From NCBI GenBank assembly GCA_002269645.1, contig NIVC01000911.1, positions 310,001 through 374,000 on the forward strand: DNA of 64,000 nucleotides, given 5' to 3'. Made by a program: the position numbers and the translations under genes. This document shows positions 4,657-34,083 of this stretch, in pieces. Source of the DNA: Macrostomum lignano (lineage: Eukaryota). A model generated the notes under the pieces. That model saw only the letters and a list, made by a program, of their open reading frames with translations. It searched no databases and had not been told where the DNA came from. Every line of letters begins with the position of its first letter. The stretch's first letter is position 1.

Positions 4657-6483
4657 TTAAAGCGTCTCTAGTATTATGCCAGGAACTCTACCAGGCTTAC
4701 TGACATATACAACGACATCGTAAATATTTTCAATTTCACTTCTATCATTGGAATTACCGTTTAGAACGATGTCAGTTGCTGGTTGCCGAGTCGTTCGTAA
4801 TCGTCGCGAACGCCGGCGGAGCCAGAATCCAAGCGCTATCAAAGCGCCACAACCGAGCACTACAGCAGACAGCAGCAGAGCCAGTCGACGATAGAAACTT
4901 GCCGGATCGACGCTTTCAGCGATCAAATCAAAGTTCACCATCATCTTCTTAAGGCTCTCTGGCCTATCTGAGTTAATCATCTGGTCTTCGAATGCAGTAG
5001 AGTAGAAACAAGTCGGATCTTCAGCACAGATCGTGTCGCTACCGTTGTACCCCACTTTCCGAGAGTATCTTACCAGTTCTATATGGTCGAGGACTTCAAT
5101 TTCAGGGTAGTGATAGTTAAACACCGCGGTGAGTGAACCCGATTTCTTTGACGCTTGTTCCTTAAAAAGGTTCAATAAATTTGGCGTGCTCTTCATGGCG
5201 GCAACGTTTACGCTAAAAATGAGTTGACCATTTTTATTGTCATACTCGATGCTCAATGCGTCTTGCCAACCGCGTTCGATCAGGAATGCTCGTGTAAGCG
5301 CGAGTCCGTTCAGACTGAAATGTCCAGTAAAGCGAGCTCCAGAAGATGTTACAGACTCAAGGAACCGTCGCTCCATAGAAAACTTCCAGTCAATGCGACT
5401 GTAAATCAGGCACAGATGTTTCCATGAGCAGTGACTCGCACTGCTAGCTGTGACATGGACTTGTGGGAGAATTTCGGGAACTAAAACGATGTGGGAGCGA
5501 GCACGCATCCAGTACATCGGCAGTTCGGGCTCACCGTCTTGTATAGATTTCACTGTACATACAAAAGTATTTGCGTCTTCAAAGGAAGCTGAAGTATTTA
5601 TTCCGTAGAAACGATTCAAATTATTTTCAGCCGGAGGTAAGTATACAGTCTGTTTAGTAAGAATCGACGAAAACTGCGAGTTTCTTTGAGTTTTAGTTTT
5701 ATAATTGACACTTATTCGCGTGTCTGCTTGGTCAGACACTTCTGTCTCGCAAGTCAGATTTATGCTGTCACCCTCAGCTACCAAAACTCGATCTGGAGGG
5801 TACCTCAGCCTCTGTGGTGGAACAACTACACGAACTTGTATATGTGCAGACACTCCTCCTGCTCTGCACATGTAGTCACCACCGTGACTTTTCTGCGACA
5901 GTTTCTTTGGCAGTTCGATCACGTGACCTCCAGTCGCGATCTTTATTCTATTGGCAAGCGTTGTCCATTGCTTAGTAGGGTAACCTGTTGACAATTCAGC
6001 AATCAGAGACTGATTTTTGTGGTAAAACTCGGATTGACGACTCCCGATCGCCGAGTTGCACACAATCGGACAAGCTAAATGAGAGCGCACCATTCCTGAT
6101 CGAAGAGTTACACTTCTTCTTTTCTTACCAACAAGACTGCATTTTGCACCGCGAACTACAAGTGGTGTTCCAGCCTCCTTTGTGCTTGGAAGAGACAAGC
6201 GTCCAACTCTTCGGCGAACCTCGTAAGGTTCCCGTTCGCCAGAAAGTGACAGAATGACGCAAAATGTGACGTCTCCTGTGCTGCGTTGTTTCATTACATC
6301 CATGAAGCCAATTGAGAACAATTTCAATCTACCTGTAGCCACGTCCAGTTGTGCATGCCGCATCAGATCCAAGTTCCACTGGTCTAGCTTCGTGTAGAAA
6401 TTATTTGTTAGAATAACTGATCGGCTGAACTGCAGATTCTGACAATGGTCTGGACTGAGCGCAAGGCCTACATTGATCAATGG
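4657..6483 (-). CDS. Ig-domain type I membrane protein, copy 1, main exon (Ig domains, TM, tail)
   Basis: 610-aa ORF with Ig motifs (HLACP...W...GGDYMCRAG; SINLTCE...FVCTV), hydrophobic TM LALLLSAVVLGCGALIALGFWL followed by RRRSRR, and a tail containing ENIYDVV. The 3' end may be spliced at a gtaagc donor near 4698. Confidence 0.8.
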   Translation of the reverse strand, partial: PLINVGLALSPDHCQNLQFSRSVILTNNFYTKLDQWNLDLMRHAQLDVATGRLKLFSIGFMDVMKQRSTGDVTFCVILSLSGEREPYEVRRRVGRLSLPSTKEAGTPLVVRGAKCSLVGKKRRSVTLRSGMVRSHLACPIVCNSAIGSRQSEFYHKNQSLIAELSTGYPTKQWTTLANRIKIATGGHVIELPKKLSQKSHGGDYMCRAGGVSAHIQVRVVVPPQRLRYPPDRVLVAEGDSINLTCETEVSDQADTRISVNYKTKTQRNSQFSSILTKQTVYLPPAENNLNRFYGINTSASFEDANTFVCTVKSIQDGEPELPMYWMRARSHIVLVPEILPQVHVTASSASHCSWKHLCLIYSRIDWKFSMERRFLESVTSSGARFTGHFSLNGLALTRAFLIERGWQDALSIEYDNKNGQLIFSVNVAAMKSTPNLLNLFKEQASKKSGSLTAVFNYHYPEIEVLDHIELVRYSRKVGYNGSDTICAEDPTCFYSTAFEDQMINSDRPESLKKMMVNFDLIAESVDPASFYRRLALLLSAVVLGCGALIALGFWLRRRSRRLRTTRQPATDIVLNGNSNDRSEIENIYDVVVYVSKPGRVPGIILETL

Positions 6484-6561
6484 CTGCAAGAATGGAGGAG
6501 CTGACTTGATCAGGTTGACTTAATTATCACTTATGATTTGGACACTTTGCGCTGTGTCCAC

Positions 6562-7158
6562 CTCTGACTCGATCATGCCTCGCGAAAACAAAGCATTCAG
6601 TATTTCCGATGCATTGTGAACCAAAGTAGGAATTTTCAACCAAGCATCCATGGTCCAAACGTAGAGTCGACCGCTTTCCATCAGAATCGTGCCATCGAAG
6701 CCTTTCCATACCACCTGCAGAATCAGCGCATCGCTAAACTTCCCGGCGAGAGCTGATCTTTCGAAACGCCAGTTGGATTTTTCAACAAGTCTAATCAGTA
6801 ATTCTGTGCGGTCTATTGAGAACAGCTCGAAAGGACTGCCGGCTGTCAAGCAAAGCTTCTCATTCCTTGTCGTTACCAGCCGATCTTTAAAGTTCCCCTG
6901 TAGTAAAGCAGTTTCAGAAGCACCTTGTTTACATTTATATCGCAGATAAATACTGTTGTACGCTTCGATATGCTTCGCTAATGAAGGAAAGTCAACTTTG
7001 ATTTTGAGCACGTGACTGGGTGACTCAGCAGATAAAACGGCCAGCTGTGCTGTTCTCTGTTGACTAGCAAACCATGTGTCGCCCCACATCAGCAAATTCT
7101 GGTTGTTGGATGCTACCAGAGCGAAATCCATTTGTAAAAGCAGCGCTGTAGCAACAAT
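6562..7158 (-). CDS. Ig-domain membrane protein copy 1, exon encoding end of signal peptide and variable N-terminal domain
   Basis: Acceptor cattcag, then IVATALLLQMDFALVAS...WGDTWF. Length is 597 nt, the same as the equivalent exon of copy 2. Putative donor GAG|gtggac at 6561. Confidence 0.65.
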
Positions 7159-7421
7159 CTGAATGAGTTGTAAATGAATTAATTTGTCAATAGAAATGAA
7201 AAGCAATGCAAAATTGTTTAGAAAATTTATTGCAAACGTTGGCTCAGTATCTAATATAGCTAAGCTGTTGGTAAAATTGAGGAGATACTTATCATCTGCC
7301 TATTTGTCAACCGACGGATTCTGGTCTTTAGTGTATATGCAAGTAGACTTTAGATTTTCTACAAGGTACTATACTATTTAAGTAGGAAAAATTTCCAAAA
7401 AAATATAGAATTTTTATTTAC

Positions 7422-7439
7422 CAAAACATTCAGTGGCAT
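7422..7439 (-). CDS. Putative first micro-exon (MPLNVL) of Ig-receptor copy 1
   Basis: aacgccATG context and TTG|gtaaat donor. Phase-0 joining gives a plausible signal peptide MPLNVLIVATALLLQMDFALVA. Confidence 0.35.
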
Positions 7440-8115
7440 GGCGTTGTCGAGAAGAATTTTCTTCCAGAAGAACCACTACAAAAACCTGTCGTCTGTATTG
7501 TGCTTTGTGTGACAGATTGATTTTTAGTAAAACAGTTGCTCCTTAGAACGCTACTTGGACATTGCAGTTATATTCCAGGTTATTAGCAGATTAAATAGTG
7601 ACCCATGCTAAAAATGTTCTTCAATTTTAAGGATTGATATGATATACAATTATAGTAGCTAAGTTCAGCATTCTACGCTCGTAGAATGAACTAAAGTTAT
7701 AATGGCTAAGTCATCAGTCGCAGTGATGTTCACTTGGCGGAATTCTAACTTTTGCAGAAGCTTTGCCTTCTGTCACAGCTATATTTCTTATATTTCTTAT
7801 TTTACGCTTGGTACCGCAACCTGCTTCTAAAATTTACAGATCGTACGCGCACGTAATGACAAGAGAGAAAAGTTCATTTTTAGAAAACATTACTAGCAAT
7901 CTACGCCCCCCGTTGGGGAGCCAAAGAAATGCAATACACGTTTTTTTAATAAGCTACATGTATCCTTGAAATCTTAAAAAATCTCCTGTCAAACCTTGTA
8001 AGCCTTGAAATGTCAGTTATCCCCCCCCACAAGCTTTAACATATCAACTTCCCCCCTTGACATCTCAGCAATGCCCCCAATAAGCCTTGGAAATCTAAAA
8101 ATATCTGTCAACCTT

Positions 8116-8177
8116 CTAACCCTAACCCTAGCCTAACCCTAACCCTAACCCTAACCCTAACCCTAACCTAACCCTAA
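8116..8177 (-). repeat. Interstitial telomeric repeat (TTAGGG)n inside element A
   Basis: About 10 CCCTAA units with variants. Confidence 0.9.
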
Positions 8178-9079
8178 AGCATTGAAATTTCAGTAATTCT
8201 CTCTAAGAGTCATTATAGCACTACTACAGCATTATAGTGATTCCCTGCAAGCCTCAACATCGTAGGGATTCCCAAATGAATCTCTTAACTTTGACATGAA
8301 GCTTCTTTTATTTTTTACATTACGCTTTTTTATCAGCGATCCCTCCCCTGAGGAGGCATCAAATAATGTAATAAAAAGTTTTCAATAAACTACATGTAGC
8401 TTCTGACTTTAGCCTTGAAATCTCATTTATACCCCCGTGAGCCTTGACATCTCAGCTATTCCCCCCGTAAGCCTTGACATGTCAGCAATGGCCCCCATAA
8501 ACCTTGAAATCTAAAAAATCCCCTGTTAACCTTGAAACCCGATAAAATATAACCCTCAACCCACACCTGACCTAAACCTAACTTTAACCCAACCTAAAGC
8601 CTTGAAATCTCAGCAATTCTTCTCCCCTAAGCCTTGACATTTTAGTGATTCTTTCTTTAAGAATCACAGCACCATAACGATTTCCACCAAGCTTTGACAT
8701 CGTAGCAATTCCCAAATGAATCTTTTAACTTCGACATGACTTTTCTTTTATGTATACATAGTGCCACTTTTATTTTTTACATGACTTTTCTTCTATCAGC
8801 GCCCCCCCGTGACGAGCCAACAAAGAATGCAATAAAAAATGGAGTAAAGTACATGAACTTTGAAGTAGCTTCTGACTTTTGCTTTGACATCTCAGAAACC
8901 CCCCCCCGTAATCTCAGTTATTCTCTGAGAGCCTTTACGTCTCAGTTTTTCTCCCCAGCACAGCATTATAGTTGCATTTAATTTTTACATGAACCCTTCA
9001 TGTCTGACATGACGTTTCTTTTATTCTACCGTGACGCTTCTTAATTTTTTAAATGACACTTTCATTAGTTTTAAATGAG

Positions 9080-12000
9080 GCTTCCATGATTTTTTCTTGA
9101 CGCTTCTATGATTTTTACATGACGCTTCTATGATTTTTATATGACGCTTCTATGATTGTTTACATGGCGCTTCTATGATTGTTTACATGACGCTTCTATG
9201 ATTTTTTTACATGACGCTTCTATGATTTTTTACATGACGCTTCTATGATTGTTTACATGACGCTTCTATGATTGTTTACATGACGCTTCTATGATTGTTT
9301 ACATGACGCTTCTATGATTGTTTACATGACGCTTCTAAGATTTTTTACATGACGCTTCTACGATTTTTTACATAACGCTTCTATGATTGTTTACATGACG
9401 CTTCTATGATTTTTTAAATGACGCTTCTATGATTGTTTACATGATGCTTCTACGATTTTTATATGACGCTTCTATGATTTTTTACATGACGCTTCTATGA
9501 TTTTTTAATGACGCTTCTATGATTTTTACATGACGCTTCTATGATTGTTTACATGACGCTTCTATGATTTTTTAAATGACGCTTCTCTGATTGTTTACAT
9601 GACGCTTCTACGATTTTTATATGACGCTTCTATGATTTTTTGAATGACGCTTCCATGATTTTTTAAATGACGCTTCTATGATTGTTTACATGACGCTTCT
9701 ATGATTGTTTACATGACGCTTCTACGATTTTTATATGACGCTTCTATGATTTTTTAAAAGACGCTTCTATGATTTTTTAATGACGCTTCTATAATTTTTT
9801 ACATGACGCTTCTATGATTTTTTACATGACGCTTCTATGATTTTATACATGACGCTTCTATGATTGTTTACATGACGCTTCTATGATTGTTTACATGACG
9901 CTTCTATGATTTTTTAAATGACGCTTCTATGATTGTTTACATGACGCTTCTATGATTTTTATATGACGCTTCTATGATTTTTTACATGACGCTTCTATGA
10001 TTGTTTACATGACGCTTCTATGATTGTTTACATGACGCTTCTACGATTTTTATATGACGCTTCTATGATTGTTTACATGACGCTTCTACGATTTTTTACA
10101 TGACGCTTCTATGATTGTTTACATGACGCTTCTATGATTTTTTAAATGACGCTTCTATGATTGTTTACATGACGATTCTACGATTTTTATATGACGCTTC
10201 TATGATTTTTTACATGACGCTTCTATGATTGTTTACATGACGCTTCTACGATTTTTACATGACGCTTTTATGATTTTTTGAATGACGCTTCTATGATTTT
10301 TTAAATGACGCTTCTATGATTGTTTACATGACGCTTCTATGATTGTTTACATGACGTTTCTACGATTTTTTACATGACGCTTCTATGATTGTTTACATGA
10401 CGTTTCTACGATTTTTTACATGACGCTTCTATGATTGTTTACATGACGCTTCTATGATTGTTTACATGACGCTTCTACGATTTTTATATGACGCTTCTAT
10501 GATTTTTTGAATGACGCTTCCATGATTTTTTAAACGACGCTTCTATGATTGTTTACATGACGCTTCTATGATTGTTTACATGACGCTTCTATGATTGTTT
10601 ACATGAGGCTTCTACGATTTTTATATGACGCTTCTTTGATTTTTTAAAAGACGCTTCTACGATTTTTTAATGACGCTTCTATGATTGTTTACATGACGCT
10701 TCTACGATTTTTATATGACGCTTCTATGATTTTTTAAAAGACGCTTCTATGATTTTTTAATGACGCTTCTATGATTTTTTACATGACGCTTCTATGATTT
10801 TTTAAATGACTCATCTATGATATTTATATGAAGCTTCTACGATTTTTTGAATGACGCTTCTATGATTTTTTACATGACGCTTCTATGATTTTTATATGAC
10901 GCTTCTATGATTTTTTACATGACGCTTCTATGATTTTTTAAATGACGCTTCTATGATTGTTTACATGACGCTTCTACGATTTTTATATGACGCTTCTATG
11001 ATTTTTTGAATGACGCTTCCATGATTTTTTAAACGACGCTTCTATGATTGTTTACATGACGCTTCTATGATTGTTTACATGACGCTTCTATGATTGTTTA
11101 CATGACGCTTCTACGATTTTTATATGACGCTTCTATGATTTTTTAAAAGACGCTTCTATGATTTTTTAATGACGCTTCTATGATTTTTTACATGACACTT
11201 CTACGATTTTTTACATGACGCTTCTATGATTGTTTACATGACGCTTCTACGATTTTTATATGACGCTTCTATGATTGTTTACATGACGCTTATATGATTT
11301 TTTAATGACGCTTCTATGATTTTTTAAATGACGCATCTATGATTTTTATATGACGCTTCTATGATTTTTTACATGACGCTTCTATGATTGTTTACATGAC
11401 GCTTCTATGATTTTTTAAATGACGCTTCTATGATTTTTTAATGACGCTTCTATGATTTTTTAAATGACCCATCTATGATATTTATATGACGCTTCTACGA
11501 TTTTTTGAATGACGCTTCTATGATTTTTGAAATGACGCTTTTATGATTTTTATATGACGCTTCTACGATTTTTTACATGACGCTTCTATGATTGTTTACA
11601 TGACGCTTCTATAATTTTTTACATGACGCTTTTATGATTTTTATATGACGCTTCTATGATTGTTTACATGACGCTTCTATGATTGTTTACATGACGCTTC
11701 TATGATTTTTTAAATGACGCTTCTATGTTTGTTTACATGATGCTTCTACGATTTTTATATGACGCTTCTATGATTTTTTAAATGACGCTTCTATGATTTT
11801 TTAATGACGCTTCTACGATTTTTACATGACGCTTCTATGATTTTTTAAATGACGCTTCTATGATTGTTTACATGACGCTTCTACGATTTTTATATAACGC
11901 TTCTATGATTTTTTGAATGACGCTTCCAGGATTTTTTAAATGACGCTTCTATGATTGTTTACATGACGCTTCTATGATTGTTTACATGACGCTTCTATGA

Positions 12001-13182
12001 TTGTTTACATGACGCTTCTACGATTTTTATATGACGCTTCTATGATTTTTTAAAAGACGCTTCCACGATTTTTTAATGACGCTTCTATGATTTTTTACAT
12101 GACGCTTCTATGATTTTTTAAATGACCCATCTATGATATTTATATGAAGCTTCTACGATTTTTTGAATGACGCTTCTATGATTTTTTACATGACGCTTCT
12201 ATGATTTTTATATGACGCTTCTATGATTTTTTACATGACGCTTCTATGATTTTTTAAATGACGCTTCTATGATTGTTTACATGACGCTTCAGTGATTGTT
12301 TACATGACGCTTCTATGATTTTTACATGACGCTTCTATGATTGTTTACATGACGCTTCTATGATTGTTTACATGACGCTTCAGTGATTGTTTACATGACG
12401 CTTCTATGATTTTTTACATGACGCTTCTATGATTGTTTACATGACGCTTCTATGATTTTTTACATGACGCTTCTATGATTGTTTACATGACGCTTCTATG
12501 ATTGTTTATATGACGCTTCTATGATTTTTTTAAAAGACGCTTCTATGATTGTTTATATGACGCTTCTATGATTTTTTTAAATGACGCTTCTATGATTGTT
12601 TACATGACGCTTCTATGATTTTTTACATGACGCTTTTATGATTGTTTACATGACGCTTCAGTGATTGTTTATATGACGCTTCGATGATTTTTTACATGAC
12701 GCTTCCATGATTGTTTACATGACGCTTCTATGATTGTTTACATGACGCTTCTATGATTGTTTATATGACGCTTCTATGATTTTTTCATGACGCTTTTATG
12801 ATTTTTACATGACGCTTCTATGATTGTTTACATGACGCTTCAATGATTGTTTACATGACGCTTCTATGATTTTTTCATGACGCTTTTATGATTTTCACAT
12901 GACGCTTTAATGATTGTTTACATGACGCTTCTATGATTGTTTATATGACGCTTCTTTGATTTTTACATGACGCTTCTATGATTGTTTGCATGACGCTTCT
13001 ATGATTTTTTACATGACGCTCCTATGATTGTTTACATGACGCTTCTATGATTGTTTACATGACGCTTCTATGATTTTTTTAAAAGACGCTTCTATGATTT
13101 TTACATGACGCTTTTATGATTTTTGACATGACGCTTCTATGATTTTTACATGACGCTTCTATGATTTTTACATGACGCTTCT
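9080..13182 (-). repeat. Satellite array, 21-23 bp unit (ATGACGCTTCTATGATTGTTTAC), inside element A
   Basis: Continuous array of near-identical units with a variable T-tract. Confidence 0.95.
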
Positions 13183-13248
13183 TTTTAAAAAGTCTTTTAG
13201 TTTTCCTGACGTTGAAAAGCTTTAATTAAAAAAATTATACTCTATGAA

Positions 13249-13312
13249 AATTCGAACCACCGTCGCTGCATTTAGCAGTTCAGTTTGTTCACCTCTAGGC
13301 TATCTCTCATCG
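13249..13312 (-). pseudogene. tRNA-like (A/B-box) cassette in element A
   Basis: Minus strand reads gatagcctagaggtgaac...ctgaactgctaaatgcagcgacggtggttcgaatt. Confidence 0.45.
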
Positions 13313-14310
13313 TTTTGATAACATCAAATTTTGCACTTATATAATTCAACACTTTAAAATCCAAGCATAGAGTAAATCACACGAAGCAGTTATGACATAA
13401 TCAGTTTCTCAGTCAGTCAGTATCAGTTAACAATTATGGTTACGCAATTTAAATCAAGTCTGTGCTACGCTTCCACACTGCATTTTCAATTCAAGTCGGA
13501 GTTACAATTCAGTTATGATGCAATCTATTTCAGAATCAGAATTCAACCAGTCAGTTTTTTCTCTAGCATTCTTACAATGCATTTCAAGTCGAAAAGTTTG
13601 CTTGACCTTTGCAAAAAAGCATGTTTTTCGAATATTAATGCCTTTAGCATCGAGCAATTTCTTAGCCACGATGCATGTACCGTCACGGGAAAATTTCTGA
13701 TCGAACAGTGCAAGTCTCATAAAAATCGGTTAAGCCATTTTTTCTCTAATCGATTACAAGCTTGATTACGTTGCTATCTAATATACTAAAAATGAAATGC
13801 TTGGTTGCTTGCTTGTAATTGATTTTCTCCCGAACGGCTCAACCGATTTTCTTCAAACTTGCACCATTCGATCAGAAATTTTTCCGTGACGGTACATGCA
13901 TCGTGGCAAAGAAATTGCTCGATGCTAAAGGGATTAAATATTCGAAAAACATGCTTTTTTGCAAAGGTCAAGCAGCTATTTCGACTTGAAACGCACTGTA
14001 AAAATGCTAGAGAAAAAACTGACTGGTTGAATTCTGATTCTGAAATAGATTGCATCACAATACACTTTATTTATCGTCTGTGTACTGGCTGAATTTGACA
14101 CTCAATTGAATTGCGTCACAGCTTTGAGTGTGAAAGTATAGTGCAGTACTGAATTTATATTACGTAACCATATTGTTAGCTTTCATAGACACTGGTACTG
14201 ACTTGCCTAAGAAATTGATTATGTCATAACTGCTTCGCGTGACTTTTTACTCTACCTGACTTGGTGTGAGTGTTGAATTATATAAGTGGTACAAATTCAC
14301 TGATAACTTC

Positions 14311-14376
14311 GATGAGAGCTAGCCTAGAGCTGAGCAGACCAGACTGCTAATGCAGCGACCTGGGTTCGAATCTAAG
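14311..14376 (+). pseudogene. tRNA-like cassette B1
   Basis: tagcctagagctga...agactgctaatgcagcgacctgggttcgaatctaag, with an A-box-like segment, a ctgctaa loop and a GGTTCGAAT B-box. Confidence 0.5.
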
Positions 14377-14444
14377 TAGTTTAAAAGTAGTAGTGTAAAA
14401 TTTTTTATTAAAAGCTTTTATTAAAGGACTAAATAAAAACACTT

Positions 14445-16455
14445 AGATTACTGCACTCGATAAGCTAAGGATTATTGCTCTTGGCAAACCAAGGAATACT
14501 GCACTCGATAAGCCAAGGATTATTGCTATTAATAAACCAAGGATTACTGCACTCAATAAACCAAGGACTATTGCTATTAATAAACCAAGGATTACTGCAC
14601 TCAATAAACCAAGGACTATTGCTCTTGGCAAACCAAGGATTACTGCACTCGATAAGCCAAGGACTATTGCTCTTGGCAAACCAAGGATTACTGCACTCAG
14701 GAAGCCAAGGATTATTGCACTTGGAAAACCAAGGATTACTGCACTCGATAAACCAAGGACTATTGCTCTTGGCAAACCAAGGATTACTGCACTCAAGAAG
14801 CCAAGGATTATTGCTATTAATAAACCAAGGATTACTGCACTTGGAAAACCAAGGATTACTGCACTCGATAAACCAAGGACTATTGCTCTTGGCAAACCAA
14901 GGATTACTGCACTCAAGAAGCCAAGGATTATTGCACTTGGAAAACCAAGGATTACTGCACTCGATAAACCAAGGACTATTGCACTTGATAAACCAAGGAA
15001 TATTGCACTTGATAGGCCAAGGATTACTGCACTTGATAAACCAAGGATTATTGCACTTGATAGGCCAAAGATTACTGCGCTTGATAAACCAAGGATTATT
15101 GCACTTGATAAACCAAGGATTATTGCACTTGATAAGCCAAGGATTACTGCGCTTGATAAACCAAGGATTATTGCACTTGATAAACAAAGGATTATTGCAC
15201 TTGATAAACAAAGGATTATTGCACTTGATAAACAAAGGATTATTGCACTTGATAAACCAAGGATTATTGCACTTGATAAGCCAAGGATTATTGCACTTGA
15301 TAAGCCATGGATTATTGCACTTGATAGTAAAGAATGTTGCACTTGATAAGCCAAGGATTACTGCACTCGATAAACCAAGGATTATTGCTATTAATAAACC
15401 AAGGATTATGCACTTGGCAAACCAAGGATTACTGCACTCGATAAGCCAAGGATTATTGCTATTAATAAACCAAGGATTACTGCACTCAATAAACCAAGAA
15501 CTATTGCTCTTGGCAAACTAACGATTACTGCACTCGATAAGCCAAGGATTATTGCTATTAATAAACCAAGGATTACTGCACTCGATAAACCAAGGATTAT
15601 TGCTATTAATAAACCAAGGATTACTGCACTCGATAAGCCAAGGATTATTGCTATTAATAAACCAAGGATTACTGCACTCGATAAACCAAGGATTATTGCT
15701 ATTAATAAACCAAGGATTATGCACTTGGCAAACCAAGGATTACTGCACTCGATAAGCCAAGGATTATTGCTATTAATAAACCAAGGATTACTGCACTCAA
15801 TAAACCAAGAACTATTGCTCTTGGCAAACTAAGGATTACTGCACTCGATAAGCCAAGGATTATTGCTATTAATAAACCAAGGATTACTGCACTCGATAAA
15901 CCAAGGATTATTGCTATTAATAAACCAAGGATTATGCACTTGGCAAACCAAGGATTACTGCACTCGATAAGCCAAGGATTATTGCTATTAATAAACCAAG
16001 GATTACTGCACTCAATAAACCAAGGACTATTGCTCTTGGCAAACCAAGGATTACTGCACTTGATTAATCAAGGATTATTGCTATTAATAAACCAAGGATT
16101 ACTGCACTCGATAAGCAAGGATTATTGCTATTAATAAACCAAGGATTACTGCACTCGATAAGCCAAGGATTATTGCTATTAATAAACCAAGGATTACTGC
16201 ACTCGATAAGCCAAGGATTATTGCTATTAATAAACCATGAATTACTGCACTCGATAAGCCAAGGATTATTGCTATTAATAAACCAAGGATTACTGCACTC
16301 ATAAGCCATGGATTATTGCTATTAATAAACCAAGGATTACTTACTGCACTTGGCAAACCAATAATTACTGCACTCGATAAGCCATGGATTATTGCTATTA
16401 ATAAACCAAGGATTACTGCACTCGATAGCCAAGGATTACTGCGCTTGATAAGCTT
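14445..16455 (+). repeat. 24-bp minisatellite array (CCAAGGATTAYTGCACTYGATAAA variants)
   Basis: Tandem 24-bp units, which produce spurious repetitive ORFs in several frames. Confidence 0.92.
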
Positions 16456-16806: not shown

Positions 16807-16862
16807 TTTAGAGAGTAGAGTTTTTTTTAATTAAAGCCTTTTAACGCCAAGACAAAAAAAAT

Positions 16863-18580
16863 TATGGAAGCGTCATGTAAACAATCATACAAGCGTCATG
16901 TAAACAATCATAGAAGCGTCATGTAAAAATCATAGAAGCGTCATGTAAAAATCATAGAAGCGTCATGTAAACAATCATAGAAGCGTCATGTTAAAATCAT
17001 AAAAGCGTCATGTAAAATCATAAAAGCGTCATAAAAAATCATAGAAGCGTCATGCAAACAATCATAGAAGCGTCATGTTAAAATCATACAAGCGTCATGT
17101 AAACAATCATACAAGCGTCATGTAAACAATCATAGAAGCGTCATGTAAAAAATCATAGAAGCGTCATGTTAAAATCATAAAAGCGTCATAAAAAATCATA
17201 GAAGCGTCATGTAAACAATCATACAAGCGTCATGTAAACAAACATAGAAGCGTCATGTAAACAATCATAGAAGCGTCATGTAAAAATCATAGAAGCGTCA
17301 TGTAAAAATCATAGAAGCGTCATGTAAACAATCATAAAAGCGTCATGTAAACAATCATAGAAGCGTCATGTAAAAATCATAGAAGCGTCATGTAAAAATC
17401 ATAGAAGCGTCATGTAAACAATCATAGAAGCGTCATGTTAAAATCATAAAAGCGTCATGTAAAATCATAAAAGCGTCATAAAAAATCATAGAAGCGTCAT
17501 GCAAACAATCATAGAAGCGTCATGTTAAAATCATACAAGCGTCATGTAAACAATCATACAAGCGTCATGTAAACAATCATAGAAGCGTCATGTAAAAAAT
17601 CATAGAAGCGTCATGTAAAAATCATAGAAGCGTCATGTAAACAATCATACAAGCGTCATGTAAACAATCATAGAAGCGTCATGTAAAAATCATAGAAGCG
17701 TCATGTAAAAATCATAGAAGCGTCATGTAAACAATCATAGAAGCGTCATGTTAAAATCATAAAAGCGTCATGTAAAATCATAAAAGCGTCATAAAAAATC
17801 ATAGAAGCGTCATGCAAACAATCATAGAAGCGTCATGTTAAAATCATACAAGCGTCATGTAAACAATCATACAAGCGTCATGTAAACAATCATAGAAGCG
17901 TCATGTAAAAAATCATAGAAGCGTCATGTTAAAATCATAAAAGCGTCATAAAAAATCATAGAAGCGTCATGTAAACAATCATACAAGCGTCATGTAAACA
18001 AACATAGAAGCGTCATGTAAACAATCATAGAAGCGTCATGTAAAAATCATAGAAGCGTCATGTAAAAATCATAGAAGCGTCATGTAAACAATCATAAAAG
18101 CGTCATGTAAACAATCATAGAAGCGTCATGTAAACAAACATAGAAGCGTCATGCAAACAATCATAAAAGCGTCATAAAAAATCATAGAAGCGTCATGTAA
18201 ACAATCATGGAAGCGTCATGTAAACAATCATAGAAGCGTCATGTAAAAATCATAGAAGCGTCATGTAAAAATCATAGAAGCGTCATGAAAAAATCATAGA
18301 AGCGTCATGTAAAAATCACAGAAGCGTCATGTAAAAATCATAGAAGCGTCATGTAAAAAATCATAGAAGCGTCATGTAAACAATCATACAAGCGTCATGT
18401 AAACAATCATAAAGCGTCATGTAAACAATCATAAAAGCGTCATGTAAACAAGCATAGAAGCGTCATGTAAACAATCATAAAAGCGTCATGTAAACAATCA
18501 TAAAAGCGTCATGTAAACAAGCATAGAAGCGTCATGTTAACATAGAAGCGTCATGAAAAAATCATAGAAGCCTCATATAA
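16863..18580 (+). repeat. Satellite array (same 21-23 bp unit as in A, opposite orientation) inside element B
   Basis: (ATCATAGAAGCGTCATGTAAACA)n. Confidence 0.95.
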
Positions 18581-19524: not shown

Positions 19525-19564
19525 TTAGGGTTAGGGTTAGGGTTAGGGTTAGGGTTAGGGTTAG
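19525..19564 (+). repeat. Interstitial (TTAGGG)n inside element B
   Basis: Six perfect units plus a partial unit. Confidence 0.9.
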
Positions 19565-25171: not shown

Positions 25172-25204
<33 letters not shown>

Positions 25205-25653
25205 GTGATCGATTAGAGAAAAAATGGCTTAACCGATTTTCATGAGACTTGCACTGTTCGATCAGAAATTTTCCCGTGACGGTACATGCATCGTGGCTAA
25301 GAAATTGCTCGATGCTAAAGGCATTAAATATTCGAAAAACATGCTCTTTGCAAAGGTCAAGCAAACTTTTCGACTTGAAATGCATTGTAAGAATGCTAGA
25401 GAAAAAATTGACTGGTTGATTCTGATTCTGAAATAGATTGCATCATAACTGAATTGTAACTCCAACTTGAATTGCGTCACAGTATTGAAAATGCAGTGTG
25501 GAAGCGTAGCACCAGACTTGATTTAGATTGTGTAACCATATTGTCAACTTTAATTGAGACTGATACTGACTTGCCTGGGAAATTGATTATGTCATAACTG
25601 CTTCGTGAGTGAGTGTTGAATTATATAAGTGCTACAATTTCACTTATAAATTC

Positions 25654-25719
25654 GATAAGATCTAGCCTAGAAGTTAACAGACTGGACTGCTAATGCAGCG
25701 ACCTGGGTTCGAATCTTAG
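25654..25719 (+). pseudogene. tRNA-like cassette in element D
   Basis: tagcctagaagttaacaga-ctgga-ctgctaa-tgcag-cgac-ctggg-ttcgaat-cttag. Anticodon-like and T-like stem-loops are recognisable. Confidence 0.5.
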
Positions 25720-25776
25720 TAGTAAATTTTTTTATTAAAAGCTTTTATTAAAAAAATAATAAATTAAAGGACTAAA

Positions 25777-28460
25777 GGCGTCATGTAAAAAATCATAGAA
25801 TAGTCATGCAAAAAATCATAGAAGCGTCATGTAAACAATCATAGAAGCGTCATGTAAAGAATCATAGAAGCGTCATGTAAGCAATCATAGAAGCGTCATG
25901 TAAAAAATCATAGAAGCGTCATGTAAAAAATCATAGAAGCGTCATGTAAACAATCATTGAAGCGTCATGTAAAAATCATTGAAGCGTCATGTAAAAATCA
26001 TGGAAGCGTCATAAAAAATCATAGAAGCGTCAAGTAAAAAATCATAGAAGCGTCATGTAAACAATCATAGAAGCGTCATGTAAAAAATCATAGAAGCGTG
26101 ATGTAAAAAATCATAGAAGCGTCATGTAAACAATCATAGAAGTGTCATGTAAAATCATAATAGATGCGTCATGTAAACAATCATAGAAGCGTCATGTAAA
26201 AAATCATAGAAGCGTCATGTAAAAAATCATAGAAGCGTCATGTAAACAATCATTGAAGCGTCATGTAAAAATCATTGAAGCGTCATAAAAAATCATAGAA
26301 GCGTCATGTAAAAAATCATAGAAGCGTCATGTAAACAATCATAGAAGTGTCATGTAAAATCATAGATGCGTCATGTAAACAATCATAGAAGCGTCATGTA
26401 AAAAATCATAGAAGCGTCATGTAAAAAATCATAGAAGCGTCATGTAAACAATCATTGAAGCGTCATGTAAACAATCATAGAAGTGTCATGTAAAATCATA
26501 GATGCGTCATGTAAACAATCATAGAAGCGTCATGTAAAAAATCATAGAAGCGTCATGTAAAAAATCATAGAAGCGTCATGTAAACAATCATTGAAGCGTC
26601 ATGTAAACAATCATAGAAGCGTCATAAAAAATCATAGAAGCGTCATGTAAAAAATCATAGAAGCGTCATGTAAACAATCATAGAAGCGTCATGTAAAAAA
26701 TCGTAGAAGCGTCATGAAAAAATCATAGAAGCGTCATGTAAACAATCATAGAAGCGTCATGTAAAAAATCATAGAAGCGTCATGTAAAAAATCATAGAAG
26801 CGTAATGTAAACAATCATAGAAGTGTCATGTAAAAATCATAGAAGCGTCATGTAAAAATCATAGAAGCGTCATGTAAACAATCATTGAAGCGTCATGTAA
26901 AAATCATAGAAGCGTCATGTAAACAATCATGGAAGCGTCATAAAAAATCATAGAAGCGTCAAGTAAAAAATCATAGAAGCGTCATGTAAACAATCATAGA
27001 AGCGTCATGTAAAAAATCATAGAAGCGTGATGTAAAAAATCATAGAAGCGTCATGTAAACAATCATAGAAGTGTCATGTAAAATCATAATAGATGCGTCA
27101 TGTAAACAATCATAGAAGCGTCATGTAAAAAATCATAGAAGCGTCATGTAAAAAATCATAGAAGCGTCATGTAAACAATCATTGAAGCGTCATGTAAAAA
27201 TCATTGAAGCGTCATAAAAAATCATAGAAGCGTCATGTAAAAAATCATAGAAGCGTCATGTAAACAATCATAGAAGTGTCATGTAAAATCATAGATGCGT
27301 CATGTAAACAATCATAGAAGCGTCATGTAAAAAATCATAGAAGCGTCATGTAAAAAATCATAGAAGCGTCATGTAAACAATCATTGAAGCGTCATGTAAA
27401 CAATCATAGAAGTGTCATGTAAAATCATAGATGCGTCATGTAAACAATCATAGAAGCGTCATGTAAAAAATCATAGAAGCGTCATGTAAAAAATCATAGA
27501 AGCGTCATGTAAACAATCATTGAAGCGTCATGTAAACAATCATAGAAGCGTCATAAAAAATCATAGAAGCGTCATGTAAAAAATCATAGAAGCGTCATGT
27601 AAACAATCATAGAAGCGTCATGTAAAAAATCGTAGAAGCGTCATGAAAAAATCATAGAAGCGTCATGTAAACAATCATAGAAGCGTCATGTAAAAAATCA
27701 TAGAAGCGTCATGTAAAAAATCATAGAAGCGTAATGTAAACAATCATAGAAGTGTCATGTAAAAATCATAGAAGCGTCATGTAAAAATCATAGAAGCGTC
27801 ATGTAAACAATCATTGAAGCGTCATGTAAAAATCATAGAAGCGTCATGTAAACAATCATTGAAGCGTCATGTAAAAATCATTTAAGCGTCATGTAAAAAT
27901 CATAGAAGCGTCATGTAAACAATCATAGAAGCGTAATGTAAAAGCAAAAAAGCGTCATGTAAAGATCATAGAAGCGTCATGTAAAAAAAATCATAGAAGC
28001 GTCATGTAAAAAATCATAGAAGCGTCATGTAAAAAATCATAGAAGCGTCATGTAAAAATCATGGAAGCGTCATGAAAAAATCATAGAAGCGTAATGTAAA
28101 AAATCATAGAAGCGTCAAGTAAAAATCATAGAAGCGTCAAGTAAAAAATCATAGAAGCGTCATGTAAAAAATCATAGAAGCGTCATGAAAAAATCATTAA
28201 AGCGTCATGTAAAAATCATAGAAGCGTCATGTAAAAATCATGAAAGCGTCATGTAAAAGGCATAGAAGCGTCATGAAAAAATCATAGAAGCGTCAAGTAA
28301 AAAATCATAGAAGCGTCAAGTAAAAATCATTAAAGCGTCATGTAAAAATCATAGAAGCGTCATGTAAAAATCATAGAAGCGTCATGTAAAAAATCATAGA
28401 AGCGTCATGTAAAAATCATGGAAGCGTCATGAAAAAATCATAGAAGCGTCATTTAAAAAA
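25777..28460 (+). repeat. Satellite array (21-23 bp unit) inside element D
   Basis: Same unit as in A and B. Confidence 0.95.
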
Positions 28461-29315
28461 TAAGGAAGCATCATGGTAGAATAAAAGAAGCGTCATGTCA
28501 GACATGAAGGGTTCATGTAAAAATTAAATGCAGCTATAATGCTGTGCTGGGGAGAAAAACAGACGTAAAGGCTCTCAGAGAATAACTGAGATTACAGGGG
28601 GGGGGGTTTCTGAGATGTCAAAGCAAAAGCCGGAAGCTACTTCAAAGTTCATGTACTTTACTCAATTTTTTTATTACATTCTTTGTTGGCTCGCCACGGG
28701 GGGAGGCGCTGATAGAAGAAGAGTCATGTAAAAAATAAAAGTGGCACTATGTATACATAAAAGAAAAGTCATGTCGAAGTTAAAAGATTCATTTGGGAAT
28801 TGCTTACAATGTCAAAGCTTGGTGGAAATCGTTATAGTGCTGTGATTCTTAAAGAAGGAATCACTAAAATGTCAAGGCTTAGGGGAGAAGAATTGCTGAG
28901 ATTTCAAGACTTTAGGTTGGGTTAAAGTTAGGTTTAGGTCAGGTGTGGGTTGAGGGTTATATTTTATCGGGTTTCAAGTTTAACAGGGGGTTTTTTAGAT
29001 GTCAAGGTTTTTTGGGGGCCATCGCTGACATGTCAAGGCTTACGGGGGAATAGCTGAGATGTCAAGGCTCACGGGGGTATAAATGAGATTTCAAGGCTAA
29101 AGTCAGAAGCTACATGTAGTTTATTGAAAACTTTTTATTACATTATTTGATGCCTCGTCAGGGGAGGGATCGCTGATAAAAATAAAAAAAGCTTCATGTC
29201 GAAGTTAAGAGATTCATTTGGGAATCCCTACGATGTCGAGGCTTGCAGGGAATCGCTATAATGCTGTAGTAGTGCTATAATGACTCTTAGAGAGAATTAC
29301 TGAAATTTCAATGCT

Positions 29316-29390
29316 TTAGGGTTAGGGTTAGGGTTAGGGTTAGGTTAGGGTTATGGTTAGGGTTAGGGTTAGGTTTAGGGTTAGGGTTAG
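29316..29390 (+). repeat. Interstitial (TTAGGG)n inside element D
   Basis: About 12 units with variants, with the same flanks as the tracts in A and B. Confidence 0.9.
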
Positions 29391-30260
29391 AAGGTTGATT
29401 GACAGATATTTTTAGATTTCCAAGGCTTATTGGGGGCATTGCTGAGATGTCAAGGGGGGAAGTTGATATGTTAAAGCTTGTGGGGGGGAATTACTGACAT
29501 GTCAAGGCTTACAAGGTTTGACAGGAGATTTTTTAAGATTTCAAGGATACATGTAGCTTATTAAAAAAACGTGTATTGCATTTCTTTGGCTCCCCAACGG
29601 GGGGCGTAGATTGCTAGTAACTGTTCTAAATCTGCTGTAAGTGTTGGCAAAGTTAAGACTGAAATGCATAGAACTATCTTTATAGGCCCAACTAATTTTG
29701 ATGAATTGCATGGTTTTGAAAATTGAAACGTTACCTTGTGCTAGAAAATTGGGACTCCTTTGACTTTTGGAAACAGCAGCCAGAGAACAGGCACAATACT
29801 ATCAATTGCGCATAAAATTCTCATTTTGCATGCTGTTATAGGTTATATTCTGCTTCTAAAAACATCACGAACAAGTGAAAAAGTTACTAAATTTTTCTCG
29901 AATTGCATCAATCTTTTACTGTTTCGACAATCGTATAATTGTTGCTATAATTGTTGAGTATTCGGGAAGCTAATCTACGAGACGTACTAAGAGCTGTGCA
30001 TTTTTCCAACAATGACAACAAATGCCAGTCAACGAAGGAAATGCCAAGTTGCCAGAGAAGGTCTTCAAGAGTGCACTTTATTATCAGTGCGATATATCCC
30101 TGATTGTCTAATGCGCTCCTAGATCGAGCTCAAGAAGGATGAGCGCAGAATTCTAGGTTATGGTGAACTTTTTTTACTATATCTTTCACGTAAAACAAAA
30201 CTAGGCTGTACGATATTGAATGCAAAGCTAAAAGCTATATATTACAGTATATTATACATT

Positions 30261-30753
30261 CGTTCGTTCGATCCGAGCCGTCCTCCAGTCCGAAGCGCTG
30301 CCCGACCGCCAGAGGGCTCGGCTGTGGCAGGCGGTGGTCGAAACCGTCCTGCTTTACAACGCCGAGTGGACGCTGACGGCTGCGCTAGAGCGGCAGCTGG
30401 ACTCGGCGCACTCAGGGCTGCTCCGTGCGGCCTTTCGAGCTAACGAGAGCGTCGGAACCGAGGCCCTGTACGATCGGGCCAAGCTGCAGCGCCCGTCCAC
30501 CATCCTGCGCCAAAGGCGACTTAAACTGGCGGGCCACGTGATCCGGGCCGAGGGCTACTGCCCCCAACCTGTTCAGGACGTCCTGCTGCTCACTTTGCAG
30601 GGTCCGTTCATGCGGGGTCAGGCCCGAACCCGTCGATACGTCGACTGCCTGCTGTGGACTTTGTTCGCTCCCAGGCTCTGCGGCGCGCCATCTGACGCGC
30701 CCTGCTCTAACTGTGACTGTGCATGCGGGGTCGCGTATTTTGTTGTTGTTGTT
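30261..30753 (+). mobile_element. 5'-truncated RTE-type non-LTR retrotransposon fragment with 14-bp TSD
   Basis: VETVLLYNAEWTLT...RQRRLKLAGHVIR resembles the post-RT region of RTE-clade LINEs. (GTT)n tail. Direct repeat gtatattatacatt at 30247-30260 and 30754-30767. Confidence 0.78.
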
Positions 30754-31395
30754 GTATATTATACATTACAATATATAAAACATGTTTTTTTAAAGCCAGA
30801 AATGTACAATGAAATGCAAGTAAAGAAAAGCGAATCAGGATAAAACCAATAGTAACCGGCATGAAACATCTGTTGATGCTAGTCGTATAGTGTATTTCTT
30901 AAGAAAACTGTACAATTGCGGACAAGATTTTTTTCAAGAAAAATATGTAAGTGGAACAGCAAGACTTCGTTGGAAAATACATTTAGGAGCGTATTACCTC
31001 TACAGAAATCTTCACATTGACTTTCTAATTTGTGTGATTAAATCGTTGGTCCGCGAGCCGTGCGTTATGGCTAGCAGCAATTTTCACAAAACAGGAAGTT
31101 TATGCAACGTCAAAATGGTAGATGAAGCCTATTCCAACACGAGGCAATGCCCATCTAAGCTCGTTAAAACGTAGGCATAAATAATCCTGTTGTTGCGTAG
31201 GTCAACTGAATATTTAAATTAAAAATTAACAAAGTAGCCATAGGCGCATCGAAAAAAAGTTTGAGTGATGACGAATCGTAGACTTTCTGGGAGAAGTCTG
31301 GTATCGTTTAAGTGTCTGCTGCTTCGAGGACTAGTGGTAATTACTTTAATTTATGAATTTATTTCAATGCCATACTTAGTAAGTTAGATGACAAT

Positions 31396-31449
31396 ATGCA
31401 AAGCGGGAAACATTTTAAGACTTCCACATGCACGAGACTGAGCCTTCTG
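31396..31449 (+). CDS. Ig-receptor copy 2, putative first exon (signal peptide start)
   Basis: ATG...CTG|gtatga, 18 codons, phase 0. Joins to VAATVFYLPHTSA to form a plausible signal peptide. Confidence 0.5.
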
Positions 31450-31578
31450 GTATGATGCTTCACGAGAGGATTCACTTTTAGATACTTATTAAAACAAATA
31501 TTTCCAAGCGTTTATTAAAAACTGAAAAAAGACAGTTTGTTCCAATTCAGCTAAACTTTTTCTATTCTAAACGCGCAG

Positions 31579-32175
31579 GTTGCAGCCACAGTCTTCTACC
31601 TGCCACATACATCGGCGCAACGAAATGGTGACAATCGGTATTTGCTGCTATGGGGCGACACCTGGTTTGCCAGTGGACCCAAATTAGCACAGCTGGCCAT
31701 TTTATCCGCCGAATCGTCCGGTCATATTCTGAATATCAAAACTGACCTTCGCTTCGGGATGACTTCAGAGAACGCAACTAAATATTGTTTCTTAAAATAC
31801 AAATGTAACATCAGTGATTCTGATACAGACTTTTCAGAAGTAAGTCTTCACAGAAATTTAAATGAACAAAAGAAAAAGCTATGCTTCCGAGGCGCTATCG
31901 CCTTTGAGATTGAATCGACAAGTGGTTTCGATAATTTCGGTTTTCAACTTATTAAATCTTTGGAACAAGGAAGTAAAAACTATAAATTTACTCCCACATT
32001 TCGAGATGCACTGACATTGCAGGTGGTATGGAAAGGCTTCGATGGCAAGATTCTGATGAAAAGCGGTCGACTCTACGTTTGGACCATGGATGCTTGGTTG
32101 AAAATTCCTACTTTGGTTCACAATGCATCGGAAATACTGAATGCTTTGTTTTCGCGAGGCATGATCGAGTCAGAG
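31579..32175 (+). CDS. Ig-receptor copy 2, exon encoding variable N-terminal domain
   Basis: Acceptor cgcgcag at 31578. 597 nt. Shares WGDTWFAS, YKC and KLC with copy 1. Putative donor GAG|gtggac at 32176. Confidence 0.65.
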
Positions 32176-32253
32176 GTGGACAGAGCGCAAAGTGTCCAAA
32201 TCATAAGTGATAATTAAGTCAACCTGATCAAGTCAGCTCCTCCATTCTTGCAG

Positions 32254-33351
32254 CCATTGATCAATGTAGGCCTTGCGCTCAGCCCAGACCATTGTCAGAA
32301 TCTGCAGTTCAGCCAATCAGTTATTCTAACAAATAATTTCTACACGAAGCTAGACCAGTGGAACTTGGATCTGATGCGGCATGCACAACTGGACGTGGCT
32401 ACAGGTAGATTGAAATTGTTCTCAATTGGCTTCATGGATGTAATGAAACAACGCAGCACAGGAGACGTCACATTTTGCGTCATTCTGTCACTTTCTGGCG
32501 AACGGGAACCTTACGAGGTTCGCCGAAGAGTTGGACGCTTGTCTCTTCCAAGCACAAAGGAGGCTGGAACACCACTTGTAGTTCGCGGTGCAAAATGCAG
32601 TCTTGTTGGTAAGAAAAGAAGAAGTGTAACTCTTCGATCAGGAATGGTGCGCTCTCATTTAGCTTGTCCGATTGTGTGCAACTCGGCGATCGGGAGTCGT
32701 CAATCCGAGTTTTACCACAACAATCAGTCTTTGATTGCTCAATTGTCAACAGGTTACCCTATTAAGCAATGGACAACGCTTGCCAATGGAATAAAGATCT
32801 CGACTGGAGGTCACGTGATCGAACTGCCGAAGAAACTGTCGCAGAAAAGTCACGGTGGTGACTACATGTGCAGAGCAGGAGGAGTGTCTGCACATATACA
32901 AGTTCATGTAGTTGTTCCACCACAGGGACTGAGGTACCCTCCAGATCGAGTTTTGGTAGCTGAGGGTGACAGCATAAATCTGACTTGCGAGACAGAAGTG
33001 TCTGACCAAGCAGACACGCGAATAAGTGTCAATTATAAAACTAAAACTCAAAGAAACTCACAGTTTTCGTCGATTCTTACCAAACAGACTGTATACTTAC
33101 CTCCGGCTGAAAATAATTTGAATCGTTTCTACGGAATAAATACTTCAGCTTCATTTGAAGACGCAAATACTTTTGTATGTACAGTGCAATCTATACAAGA
33201 CGGTGAGCCAGAACTGCCGATGTACTGGATGCGTGCTCGCTCCCACATCGTTTTAGTTCCCGAAATTCTCCCAGCAGCCCATGTCACAGCTAGCAGTGCG
33301 AGTCACTGCTCATGGAAACATCTGTGCCTGATTTACAGTCGCATTGACTAA
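32254..33351 (+). CDS. Ig-receptor copy 2, main exon up to premature TAA
   Basis: Near-identical to copy 1. Acceptor ttcttgcag at 32253. TAA at 33349-33351 where copy 1 has TGG. Confidence 0.7.
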   Translation, partial: PLINVGLALSPDHCQNLQFSQSVILTNNFYTKLDQWNLDLMRHAQLDVATGRLKLFSIGFMDVMKQRSTGDVTFCVILSLSGEREPYEVRRRVGRLSLPSTKEAGTPLVVRGAKCSLVGKKRRSVTLRSGMVRSHLACPIVCNSAIGSRQSEFYHNNQSLIAQLSTGYPIKQWTTLANGIKISTGGHVIELPKKLSQKSHGGDYMCRAGGVSAHIQVHVVVPPQGLRYPPDRVLVAEGDSINLTCETEVSDQADTRISVNYKTKTQRNSQFSSILTKQTVYLPPAENNLNRFYGINTSASFEDANTFVCTVQSIQDGEPELPMYWMRARSHIVLVPEILPAAHVTASSASHCSWKHLCLIYSRID

Positions 33352-34083
33352 AAGTTTTCTATCGAGCGACGGTTCCTTGAGTCTGTAACATCTTCTGGAG
33401 CTCGCTTTACTGGACATTTCAGTCTGAACGGACTCGCGCTCACACGAGCATTCCTAATCGAACGCGGTTGGCAAGACGCATTGAGCATCGAGTATGACAA
33501 TAAAAATGGTCAACTCATTCTTAGCGTAAGCGTTGCCGCCACGAAGAGTACGCCAAATTTATTGAACCTTTTTAAAGAACAAGCGTCAAAGAAATCGGGT
33601 TCACTCACCGCGGTGTTTAACTATCACTACCCTGACATTGAAGTCCTCGACCATATAGAACTGGTAAGATACTCTCGGAAAGTGGAGTACAACGGTAGCG
33701 ACACAATCTGTGCTGAAGATCCGACTTGTTTCTACTCTACTGCATTCGAAGACCAGCTGATTAACTCAGATAGGTCAGAGAGCCTTACGAAGATGATGGT
33801 GAACTTTGATTTGATCGCTGAAAGCGTCGATCCGGCAAGTTTCTATCGTCGACTGGCTCTGCTGCTGTCTGCTTCAGTGCTCGGTTGTGGCGCTTTGATA
33901 GCGCTTGGATTCTGGCTCCGCCGGCGTTCGAGACATCAAAGTGTCGTGTCTACAAGGCCGCAATGCCGCTGGGAAACTGAGCCCGGAAACAATTTCGAAC
34001 GGCAAGACGCTTACGATGTCGTACTTTTTGTTGATAAGCCAGAGCCGACTGCTGTTATTAGAAATGATTTTTGTCGTAAATAG
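33352..34083 (+). pseudogene. In-frame remainder of Ig-receptor copy 2 (stalk, TM, divergent tail) behind the premature stop
   Basis: The frame stays open after the TAA. TM LALLLSASVLGCGALIALGFWL; tail ...QDAYDVVLFVDKP... Confidence 0.65.

Follow-up and report, generated by a model that had tools for sequence, protein, structure and literature searches.

We analysed a 64,000-nucleotide stretch of the genome of the flatworm Macrostomum lignano (assembly GCA_002269645.1, contig NIVC01000911.1, positions 310,001 to 374,000; hereafter the window, numbered from its first letter). It holds two divergently oriented homologous genes, here called A (4657-7439, minus strand) and B (31396-34083, plus strand), which are probably old paralogs from an adhesion-type flatworm family, with a core homogenised by interlocus gene conversion within a palindrome-like structure. 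Comparison of the window with itself, by repeat search and BLAST, identified an inverted repeat in which 4803-6738 (minus strand, arm A) and 31999-33934 (plus strand, arm B) align over 1936 nt without a gap. The two arms are 97.5% identical, with 48 mismatches (29 transitions and 19 transversions) and no insertions or deletions (indels). This homogenised and putatively converted block starts in the last third of exon 2 and includes both the transmembrane segment and the stop-transfer motif RRRSR. Plotted along the alignment of the two genes, identity changes in steps: it is approximately 45-57% in the 5′ coding part up to about 6760/6740, then 96-100%, and approximately 45% below about 4800. 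An earlier sequence-only reading of this DNA had suggested such a plot and had described the pair's orientation, start codons (7439 and 31396), stop codons (4657 and 34083) and shared motifs as we find them; the indel-free core that it noted is real and slightly longer than the 1913 nt it gave. Two in-frame stop codons and the inverted homology upstream of the genes (a repeat, R, and a 23-bp satellite) had escaped it, and are described below.

The divergence between A and B was estimated for each region by the Nei-Gojobori method. In the N-terminal region synonymous divergence (dS) is saturated at 1.57 and non-synonymous divergence (dN) is 0.57 (dN/dS 0.37; 54% nucleotide and 37% amino acid identity), with the motifs WGDTWFAS, YKC and KLC present in both copies. 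Within the core dS falls to 0.036 and dN to 0.018 (dN/dS 0.5; 97.7% nucleotide and 96% amino acid identity). Immediately after the transmembrane segment the similarity is lost again, the tails being 30% identical in amino acid sequence with dN 0.83, saturated dS and a dN/dS that is not computable. The weak N-terminal similarity and the abrupt divergence of the tails thus stood up to measurement. A contrast in dS of approximately 40-fold inside a single gene does not arise from protein constraint, and indicates that the common ancestor of the core is much younger than that of the ends. Both tails have similar lengths and share YDVV..KP, and the N-domain framework is also common to A and B; the original duplication therefore spanned the gene in full, and the overwriting of the core came later. 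Adjacent M. lignano paralogs of the same family are uniformly 41-47% identical along their length, so it is the divergence of the A and B ends that follows the family norm and the core that is the exception. These results support the part of the sequence-only reading according to which the paralogs share a homogenised core but have kept a divergent N-domain and tail.

Within the block, a run of 405 nt is free of differences (6017-6421, minus strand, in A; 32316-32720 in B). This exceeds the expectation for 48 randomly placed differences (permutation P = 0.00036), which argues for at least two conversion events and suggests that the run is a nested, more recent conversion tract. The GC content of third codon positions is 0.45 in the core and 0.27-0.44 at the ends; this signal is weak, compatible with GC-biased conversion and not decisive for it.

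From these observations we infer a process of ordinary, textbook interlocus gene conversion. The inverted arms would pair, permitting non-allelic conversion between A and B that overwrote a 1.94-kb tract from the middle of exon 2 to just beyond the transmembrane segment. The same process would have homogenised the upstream module of R and satellite to a similar divergence of approximately 2.5-2.8%, while the 5′ part of the gene with its promoter, and the tail, would have escaped and kept the divergence of ordinary old paralogs. Copy B would have gained a premature stop codon afterwards.

A palindrome-like structure of approximately 29 kb, with arms of approximately 9 kb and a spacer of approximately 11 kb, carries the two genes at its outer ends. 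Upstream of each gene is a copy of R (7879-9031, plus strand, beside A; 28499-29630, minus strand, beside B). The two 1.1-kb copies are inverted and 97.2% identical, differing by 31 substitutions and 13 indels. Each adjoins a 23-bp satellite array (TGACGCTTCTATGATTTTTTACA), of approximately 182 units in arm A (9032-13182, plus strand) and approximately 120 units in the opposite orientation in arm B (25778-28498, minus strand). Beyond the satellites the distal flanks are still homologous (13001-13758 and 25204-25957, 84% identical), such that the arms reach to 13758 and 25204. The equal substitution divergence of R (2.8%) and the core (2.5%) indicates either roughly simultaneous homogenisation of the two or homogenisation of the whole arm. 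R and the core are separated by an unconverted island that measures 1.1 kb in A and 2.4 kb in B. The island of B includes a specific upstream region (29631-31395, plus strand) that has no similarity to the 447 bp upstream of A, and it carries a fragment of a non-LTR (long terminal repeat) retrotransposon reverse transcriptase at approximately 30265-30843 (plus strand).

The module of R (approximately 1.1 kb) and 23-bp satellite occurs three times in the window, once without an adjacent gene. This third occurrence lies in the palindrome spacer (16856-19684, minus strand) and consists of satellite at 16856-18670 and a repeat, R′, at 18691-19684 that is 88% identical to the R of arm A. A gene copy beside it was searched for within the window and not found. 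The module may be a family of mobile or satellite-associated repeats and not part of a promoter. The spacer also contains a 24-bp satellite (14446-16451, approximately 84 units), which gives long spurious open reading frames (ORFs) on both strands.

Divergently oriented homologous genes in a long inverted repeat, with arm identity far higher than the age of the duplication would predict, are known from inverted gene pairs of C. elegans (PMC1803023) and from human Y palindromes (PMC8600007), where this identity implies ongoing gene conversion between the arms. As in these systems, the A and B arms are far more similar than the adjacent homologous sequence, and the boundaries are sharp. The published palindromes differ in having nothing like the unconverted island of 1.1-2.4 kb seen here, which covers the promoter and N-terminal exon, nor an outer boundary inside coding sequence. 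The published cases are supported by conservation across species.

Genes A and B have the same layout, with a short exon 1 carrying the ATG, a phase-0 intron within the signal peptide, a 597-nt exon 2 and a long exon 3 that ends past the transmembrane helix with a tail of approximately 53 residues (53-54). In A, exon 1 occupies 7422-7439, intron 1 7159-7421, exon 2 6562-7158 and exon 3 4657-6483, terminating in a TAA at 4657-4659; the segment 6484-6561 (minus strand) is questionable, either a short intron or read-through sequence. In B, the corresponding positions are 31396-31449, 31450-31578, 31579-32175 and 32254-34083, with a terminal TAG and the questionable segment at 32176-32253 (plus strand). 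The equal length of exon 2 in both copies, as given in the sequence-only reading, holds provided that the donor GAG|GTGGAC is used. Intron 1 has good splice signals in both copies and a sequence that is unrelated between them, which fits an old paralog pair. If the 78-nt segment is taken as an intron, A encodes 813 amino acids with a signal peptide, N-domain, Ig (immunoglobulin)-like region, transmembrane segment and 53-residue tail, while the conceptual product of B is 826 amino acids, broken by a premature stop. The transmembrane helix (4819-4884, minus strand, in A; 33853-33918 in B) lies within the converted block and contains no charged residue. Hydropathy peaks at the N-terminus and at residues 736-760, and the AlphaFold2 model described below places a helix at 527-558.

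An exhaustive HMMER (phmmer) search of 1.84 billion representative proteins, with exon 3 only as the query, returned 24 matches. Six are full-length relatives (E = 5e-29 to 1e-13) and the others match only through generic Ig domains. The six relatives all come from Macrostomum lignano and have approximately 900 amino acids (one has 723), for example PAA70766.1/A0A267FAG6, PAA49069.1 and A0A1I8GDY1. They carry automatic annotations only ('Bravo_FIGEY domain-containing', 'Neurofascin/L1/NrCAM C-terminal domain-containing' or 'Ig-like domain-containing'); of the proposal that the genes form an undescribed family, what holds is that the family is uncharacterised, since annotated homologues already exist in this species. 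With tblastn the window genes align to the family in single high-scoring segment pairs over residues 6-756 (E = 1e-46), at 22-31% identity, and the alignment is collinear between the N-domain and the transmembrane segment. The window genes and their relatives have in common a set of invariant cysteines, the motifs CPI.C, Y.C.AG and CFYST.F, and the N-domain pattern W.D.W ... Y.C ... SN.L.VW.LD; the signal peptide and single C-terminal transmembrane segment are likewise present as in the relatives. The M. lignano family genes occur as tandem pairs at two loci and as a single gene at one. These pairs are tandem and uniformly diverged, whereas the window pair is inverted and mosaic.

Evidence for an Ig-like fold comes from several sources. 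The best-modelled beta-sandwich domain (5824-6141, minus strand, in A) contains CPIVC and DYMCRAGG and is where generic Ig proteins such as Dscam and FcRL match. A second Ig-like stretch (5548-5805, minus strand) gave the sole Pfam Ig match (Ig_3, E = 3e-4), which is below the curated cut-off, and a sequence search of PDB gave weak Ig matches. AlphaFold2 with an alignment of 15 sequences reached an overall predicted local distance difference test (pLDDT) score of 56.6 and modelled residues 115-220 of exon 3 confidently as a beta-sandwich; the single-sequence model (pLDDT 34) was unusable. The top Foldseek matches were the Ig arrays of contactin-1, neurofascin-155, titin and NEGR1 (E down to 4e-9, TM-scores of approximately 0.2). 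The description of the genes as Ig-domain receptors is therefore partly supported, for this region, and does not extend to the N-domain, in which Pfam detected no Ig signature and whose profile had no match among PDB sequences. The predicted architecture would begin with a signal peptide and a conserved N-domain, continue through Ig-like beta-sandwich domains to a membrane-proximal CFYST domain, and end in a transmembrane segment followed by a tail.

Because the Macrostomum homologues carry Bravo_FIGEY tails and the fold searches return adhesion-type Ig arrays, we consider it most likely that the proteins act in cell adhesion or recognition and are related to the L1/neurofascin-like immunoglobulin superfamily (IgSF), as far as sequence and model similarity can indicate. 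Like the L1-family cell adhesion molecules (L1, neurofascin, NrCAM, neuroglian), they appear to be type I IgSF-like surface proteins, and Macrostomum relatives carry the Bravo_FIGEY domain that defines the L1 family. Of five Macrostomum proteins tested, three (P0001, P0003, P0004) carried this tail (PF13882), and it was absent from Macrostomum clusters 4-6; it thus does not define the whole flatworm family. Whereas the relatives often have a FIGxY tail, the 53-54-residue tails of A and B lack this part: there was no Pfam match at E ≤ 1, no FIG.Y motif and no such exon elsewhere in the window, and the ankyrin-binding FIGQY cytoplasmic motif is not present in either gene. The L1-type array of six Ig and three to five fibronectin type III domains was also not recovered, Pfam giving one sub-threshold Ig match and no fn3. 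Conversely, the L1-family molecules have no counterpart to the N-domain and alpha/beta segments of the window genes.

Two in-frame stops bear on whether the genes are functional. The first is restricted to copy B, where a TAA at 33349-33351 (plus strand) replaces a TGG (Trp) codon of A through two adjacent G-to-A changes. All Macrostomum proteins have an aromatic residue (Phe) in this column, so the position is coding and the stop a premature one, encountered before the membrane-proximal domain and the transmembrane segment. At the other sites at which A and B differ, B matches the family consensus at 20 and A at 10, and because B is the closer to consensus its decay must be recent. Given the premature TAA and the retrotransposon fragment upstream, copy B has probably become a pseudogene recently, or else is a truncated form. 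Non-LTR retrotransposon fragments lie on both sides of this gene (30265-30843 and 34686-35105, both plus strand), and the first is 72% identical in nucleotide sequence to a fragment that lies between the two family members at locus L002 of M. lignano.

The second stop, also TAA, is common to both copies (6520-6522, minus strand, in A; 32215-32217 in B) and lies in the questionable segment that the sequence-only reading had modelled as a 78-nt intron. The borders of this candidate intron are good, with a canonical donor (GAG|GTGGAC) and a strong pyrimidine-rich acceptor (TTGCAG) flanking the TAA in frame. Yet the segment translates to VNLIKSAPPFLQ, homologous to the family coding sequence ..vvNALRNAPPFLRAK, which places the common TAA in ancestrally coding sequence. 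The Macrostomum family genes have no intron here and encode the ectodomain in one exon. Against a Macrostomum-only profile, read-through scored best (222 bits), followed by introns of 27 nt (209), 57 nt (201) and 78 nt (191). Use of TAA as a sense codon was rejected, since the terminal TAA of A gives a tail whose length matches the TAG-terminated tail of B.

A live gene A, in which a short and evolutionarily young intron removes the common TAA, is about as probable as its opposite on this sequence evidence. That both copies are now non-functional and truncated after the N-domain carries substantial though less than even probability. The pair would then be decaying, both members killed by the common TAA, with the block neutral and kept similar only through arm-to-arm conversion. 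In line with this, the supposed intron encodes a peptide conserved in the family and read-through scores 14-31 bits above any intron model. Copy B has its second stop, the core differences are spread uniformly over codon positions, and the exhaustive protein search contained no near-identical annotated protein. The single nonsense change in the core is compatible with the approximately two expected by chance among 48 changes, which also counts against recent function. In favour of a functional gene, A retains an open frame of 610 codons, the splice signals flank the TAA in frame, and the core has a weak synonymous excess (dN/dS 0.5, p = 0.03). Furthermore, there are no indels among the 48 substitutions of the 1936-nt core compared with 13 per 31 substitutions in the 1.1 kb of R, a contrast that is inflated by the repeat-rich nature of R. 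The indel-free core and the synonymous excess together speak for recent constraint on the reading frame. Intronization following a nonsense mutation has been proposed elsewhere (PMC2586383). It is an unlikely extension that conversion spread such a new short intron, formed from conserved coding sequence and bypassing the TAA, to both paralogs while selection kept N-domain and tail apart, giving two flatworm-specific IgSF-like receptors with a common stalk and distinct binding and signalling ends. The common stop in conserved sequence, flanked by good splice signals, is the only unusual point of the pair.

Several observations weigh against conversion between old paralogs of an adhesion-type family. 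The core differences fall almost evenly on the three codon positions (15/14/19) and look nearly neutral; the AlphaFold2 model is of no more than moderate quality (pLDDT 56.6), with low Foldseek TM-scores (approximately 0.2); R has a third copy and may be an independent repeat family outside one conversion history; and the equal divergence of R and core also fits one recent duplication with replacement of the ends. In this last alternative an inverted duplication approximately 2.5% ago copied the entire arm with its R, satellite and gene, after which ectopic conversion from a divergent third member of the family, located elsewhere in the genome, replaced the 5′ part and the tail in one of the copies. 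M. lignano has several members of the family, and the divergence of R (2.8%) is close to that of the core (2.5%), in keeping with such a duplication. It would nonetheless need two separate replacement tracts in addition to an unalignable promoter, and no third copy is present in the window. A and B have also kept the position of intron 1, the 597-nt exon and YDVV..KP, as an old local pair would. We regard end replacement as improbable, and conversion between long-separated paralogs as the better account of the mosaic.

The sequence-only reading had gone further, and likened the genes to paired immune receptors and to the allorecognition genes of Hydractinia, with a ligand-binding N-domain that diversifies. 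In this interpretation selection would hold the N-domains and tails of polymorphic self/non-self or paired recognition receptors distinct while the core evolves in concert. The proteins are predicted to be IgSF-like and exposed at the cell surface, and it is precisely the distal domain and the tail that are left unconverted. Diversification is not apparent in the N-domain itself, which has a dN/dS of 0.37 at saturated dS and is conserved across the Macrostomum relatives; the ends of A and B show the divergence of ordinary old paralogs. Of the findings that the sequence-only reading had named as speaking against it, two were made: a tblastn search of the window returned copies A and B only, with no further gene copy, and the N-domain has no non-synonymous excess. 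One of these two copies carries a nonsense codon, and the other Macrostomum paralog pairs have no comparable mosaic pattern.

Nor do the known receptor systems correspond closely. Vertebrate paired immune receptors (KIR, LILR, SIRP, PILR) are likewise neighbouring IgSF-like surface paralogs with a common core and different tails. In those receptors the ligand-binding domains are similar and the transmembrane segments and tails differ (a charged residue as opposed to an immunoreceptor tyrosine-based inhibitory motif, ITIM), whereas in the window pair it is the distal N-domain that differs, at 37% identity. The transmembrane segments of A and B are near-identical and uncharged, and the tails contain no ITIM, no immunoreceptor tyrosine-based switch motif (ITSM) and no immunoreceptor tyrosine-based activation motif (ITAM), only the common YDVV. 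The Hydractinia Alr complex comprises 41 genes with a V-set domain 1, ITAM/ITIM tails and extreme polymorphism (PMC9546547). It resembles the window pair in consisting of clustered paralogs and pseudogenes for divergent invertebrate IgSF-like surface proteins. In the window there is no complex of 41 genes (two copies), no ITAM or ITIM and no detected sequence homology, the exhaustive HMMER search having found no cnidarian homologue (its exon 3 query did not include the N-domain). The paired-receptor analogy therefore fails and the Alr analogy finds no support in motifs, copy number or sequence, and a recognition-receptor pair of this kind is in our view a distinctly remote prospect.

Least probable of all, and very improbable, is a false inverted duplication or misplaced haplotig produced by assembly: the region is dense in satellites that are hard to assemble, but the arms lie 25 kb apart, differ by 48 substitutions (transitions/transversions 29/19) with no indels, and form a mosaic with deeply divergent homologous ends and different upstream sequence, a pattern that neither a duplicated haplotype nor a chimeric read gives.

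The remainder of the window contains genes, mobile elements and tandem repeats. At 83-577 (plus strand) lies the last coding part of a histidine/aromatic-L-amino-acid decarboxylase (PDB 4e1o, E = 3.7e-7; missed by Pfam), followed by a poly-Q tail. Directly after this ORF is an array of 14/21/70-bp units (512-777) that is CCCTAA-rich, resembling telomere repeats. Degenerate pol remnants of an LTR retrotransposon (RVT_1, RT_RNaseH) occupy approximately 37400-41500 (minus strand), with a GC content of 58% compared with 31-46% around them. An ORF at 43226-43828 (minus strand) encodes an HTH_Tnp_4 domain, which is typical of PIF/Harbinger-type DDE transposases. The window also shares repeat-like DNA with the M. 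lignano family loci, at 72-85% identity. One such element, of approximately 170 bp (48542-48710), matches positions 2771-2941 of locus L003 at 85% in both orientations, indicating that it is internally palindromic and similar to a miniature inverted-repeat transposable element.

A 1611-codon open frame (50595-55430, plus strand) contains long poly-Q runs and a repeat (51504-53906) of approximately 64 copies of a 36-nt unit encoding PPASQAYQQSAP. This frame may resemble the N-terminal part of a Sec16-like protein, with the ORF at 59266-59700 perhaps a later exon, although Pfam and PDB searches, which covered the ORF at 59266-59700 only, did not support this. A chain of minisatellites with periods of 28, 14/56, 23/45, 21, 22 and 40 bp follows (55439-63331), probably in introns or downstream of the long ORF, and tandem repeats are unusually dense here. 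An Rfam scan of the window detected no RNA family.

Taken together, the window offers a clean case of a conversion tract with its edges inside exons, in which a core with dS of 0.04 lies beside ends with dS above 1.5. Such mosaics call for caution, because they can mimic diversifying receptors when the ends are merely old. The locus also draws attention to an uncharacterised, flatworm-restricted family of surface proteins whose tails relate it to L1 and neurofascin. If transcripts show splicing across the common TAA, the pair would represent a possible case of intronization caught in the act; otherwise it would reflect ordinary paralog biology in M. lignano.

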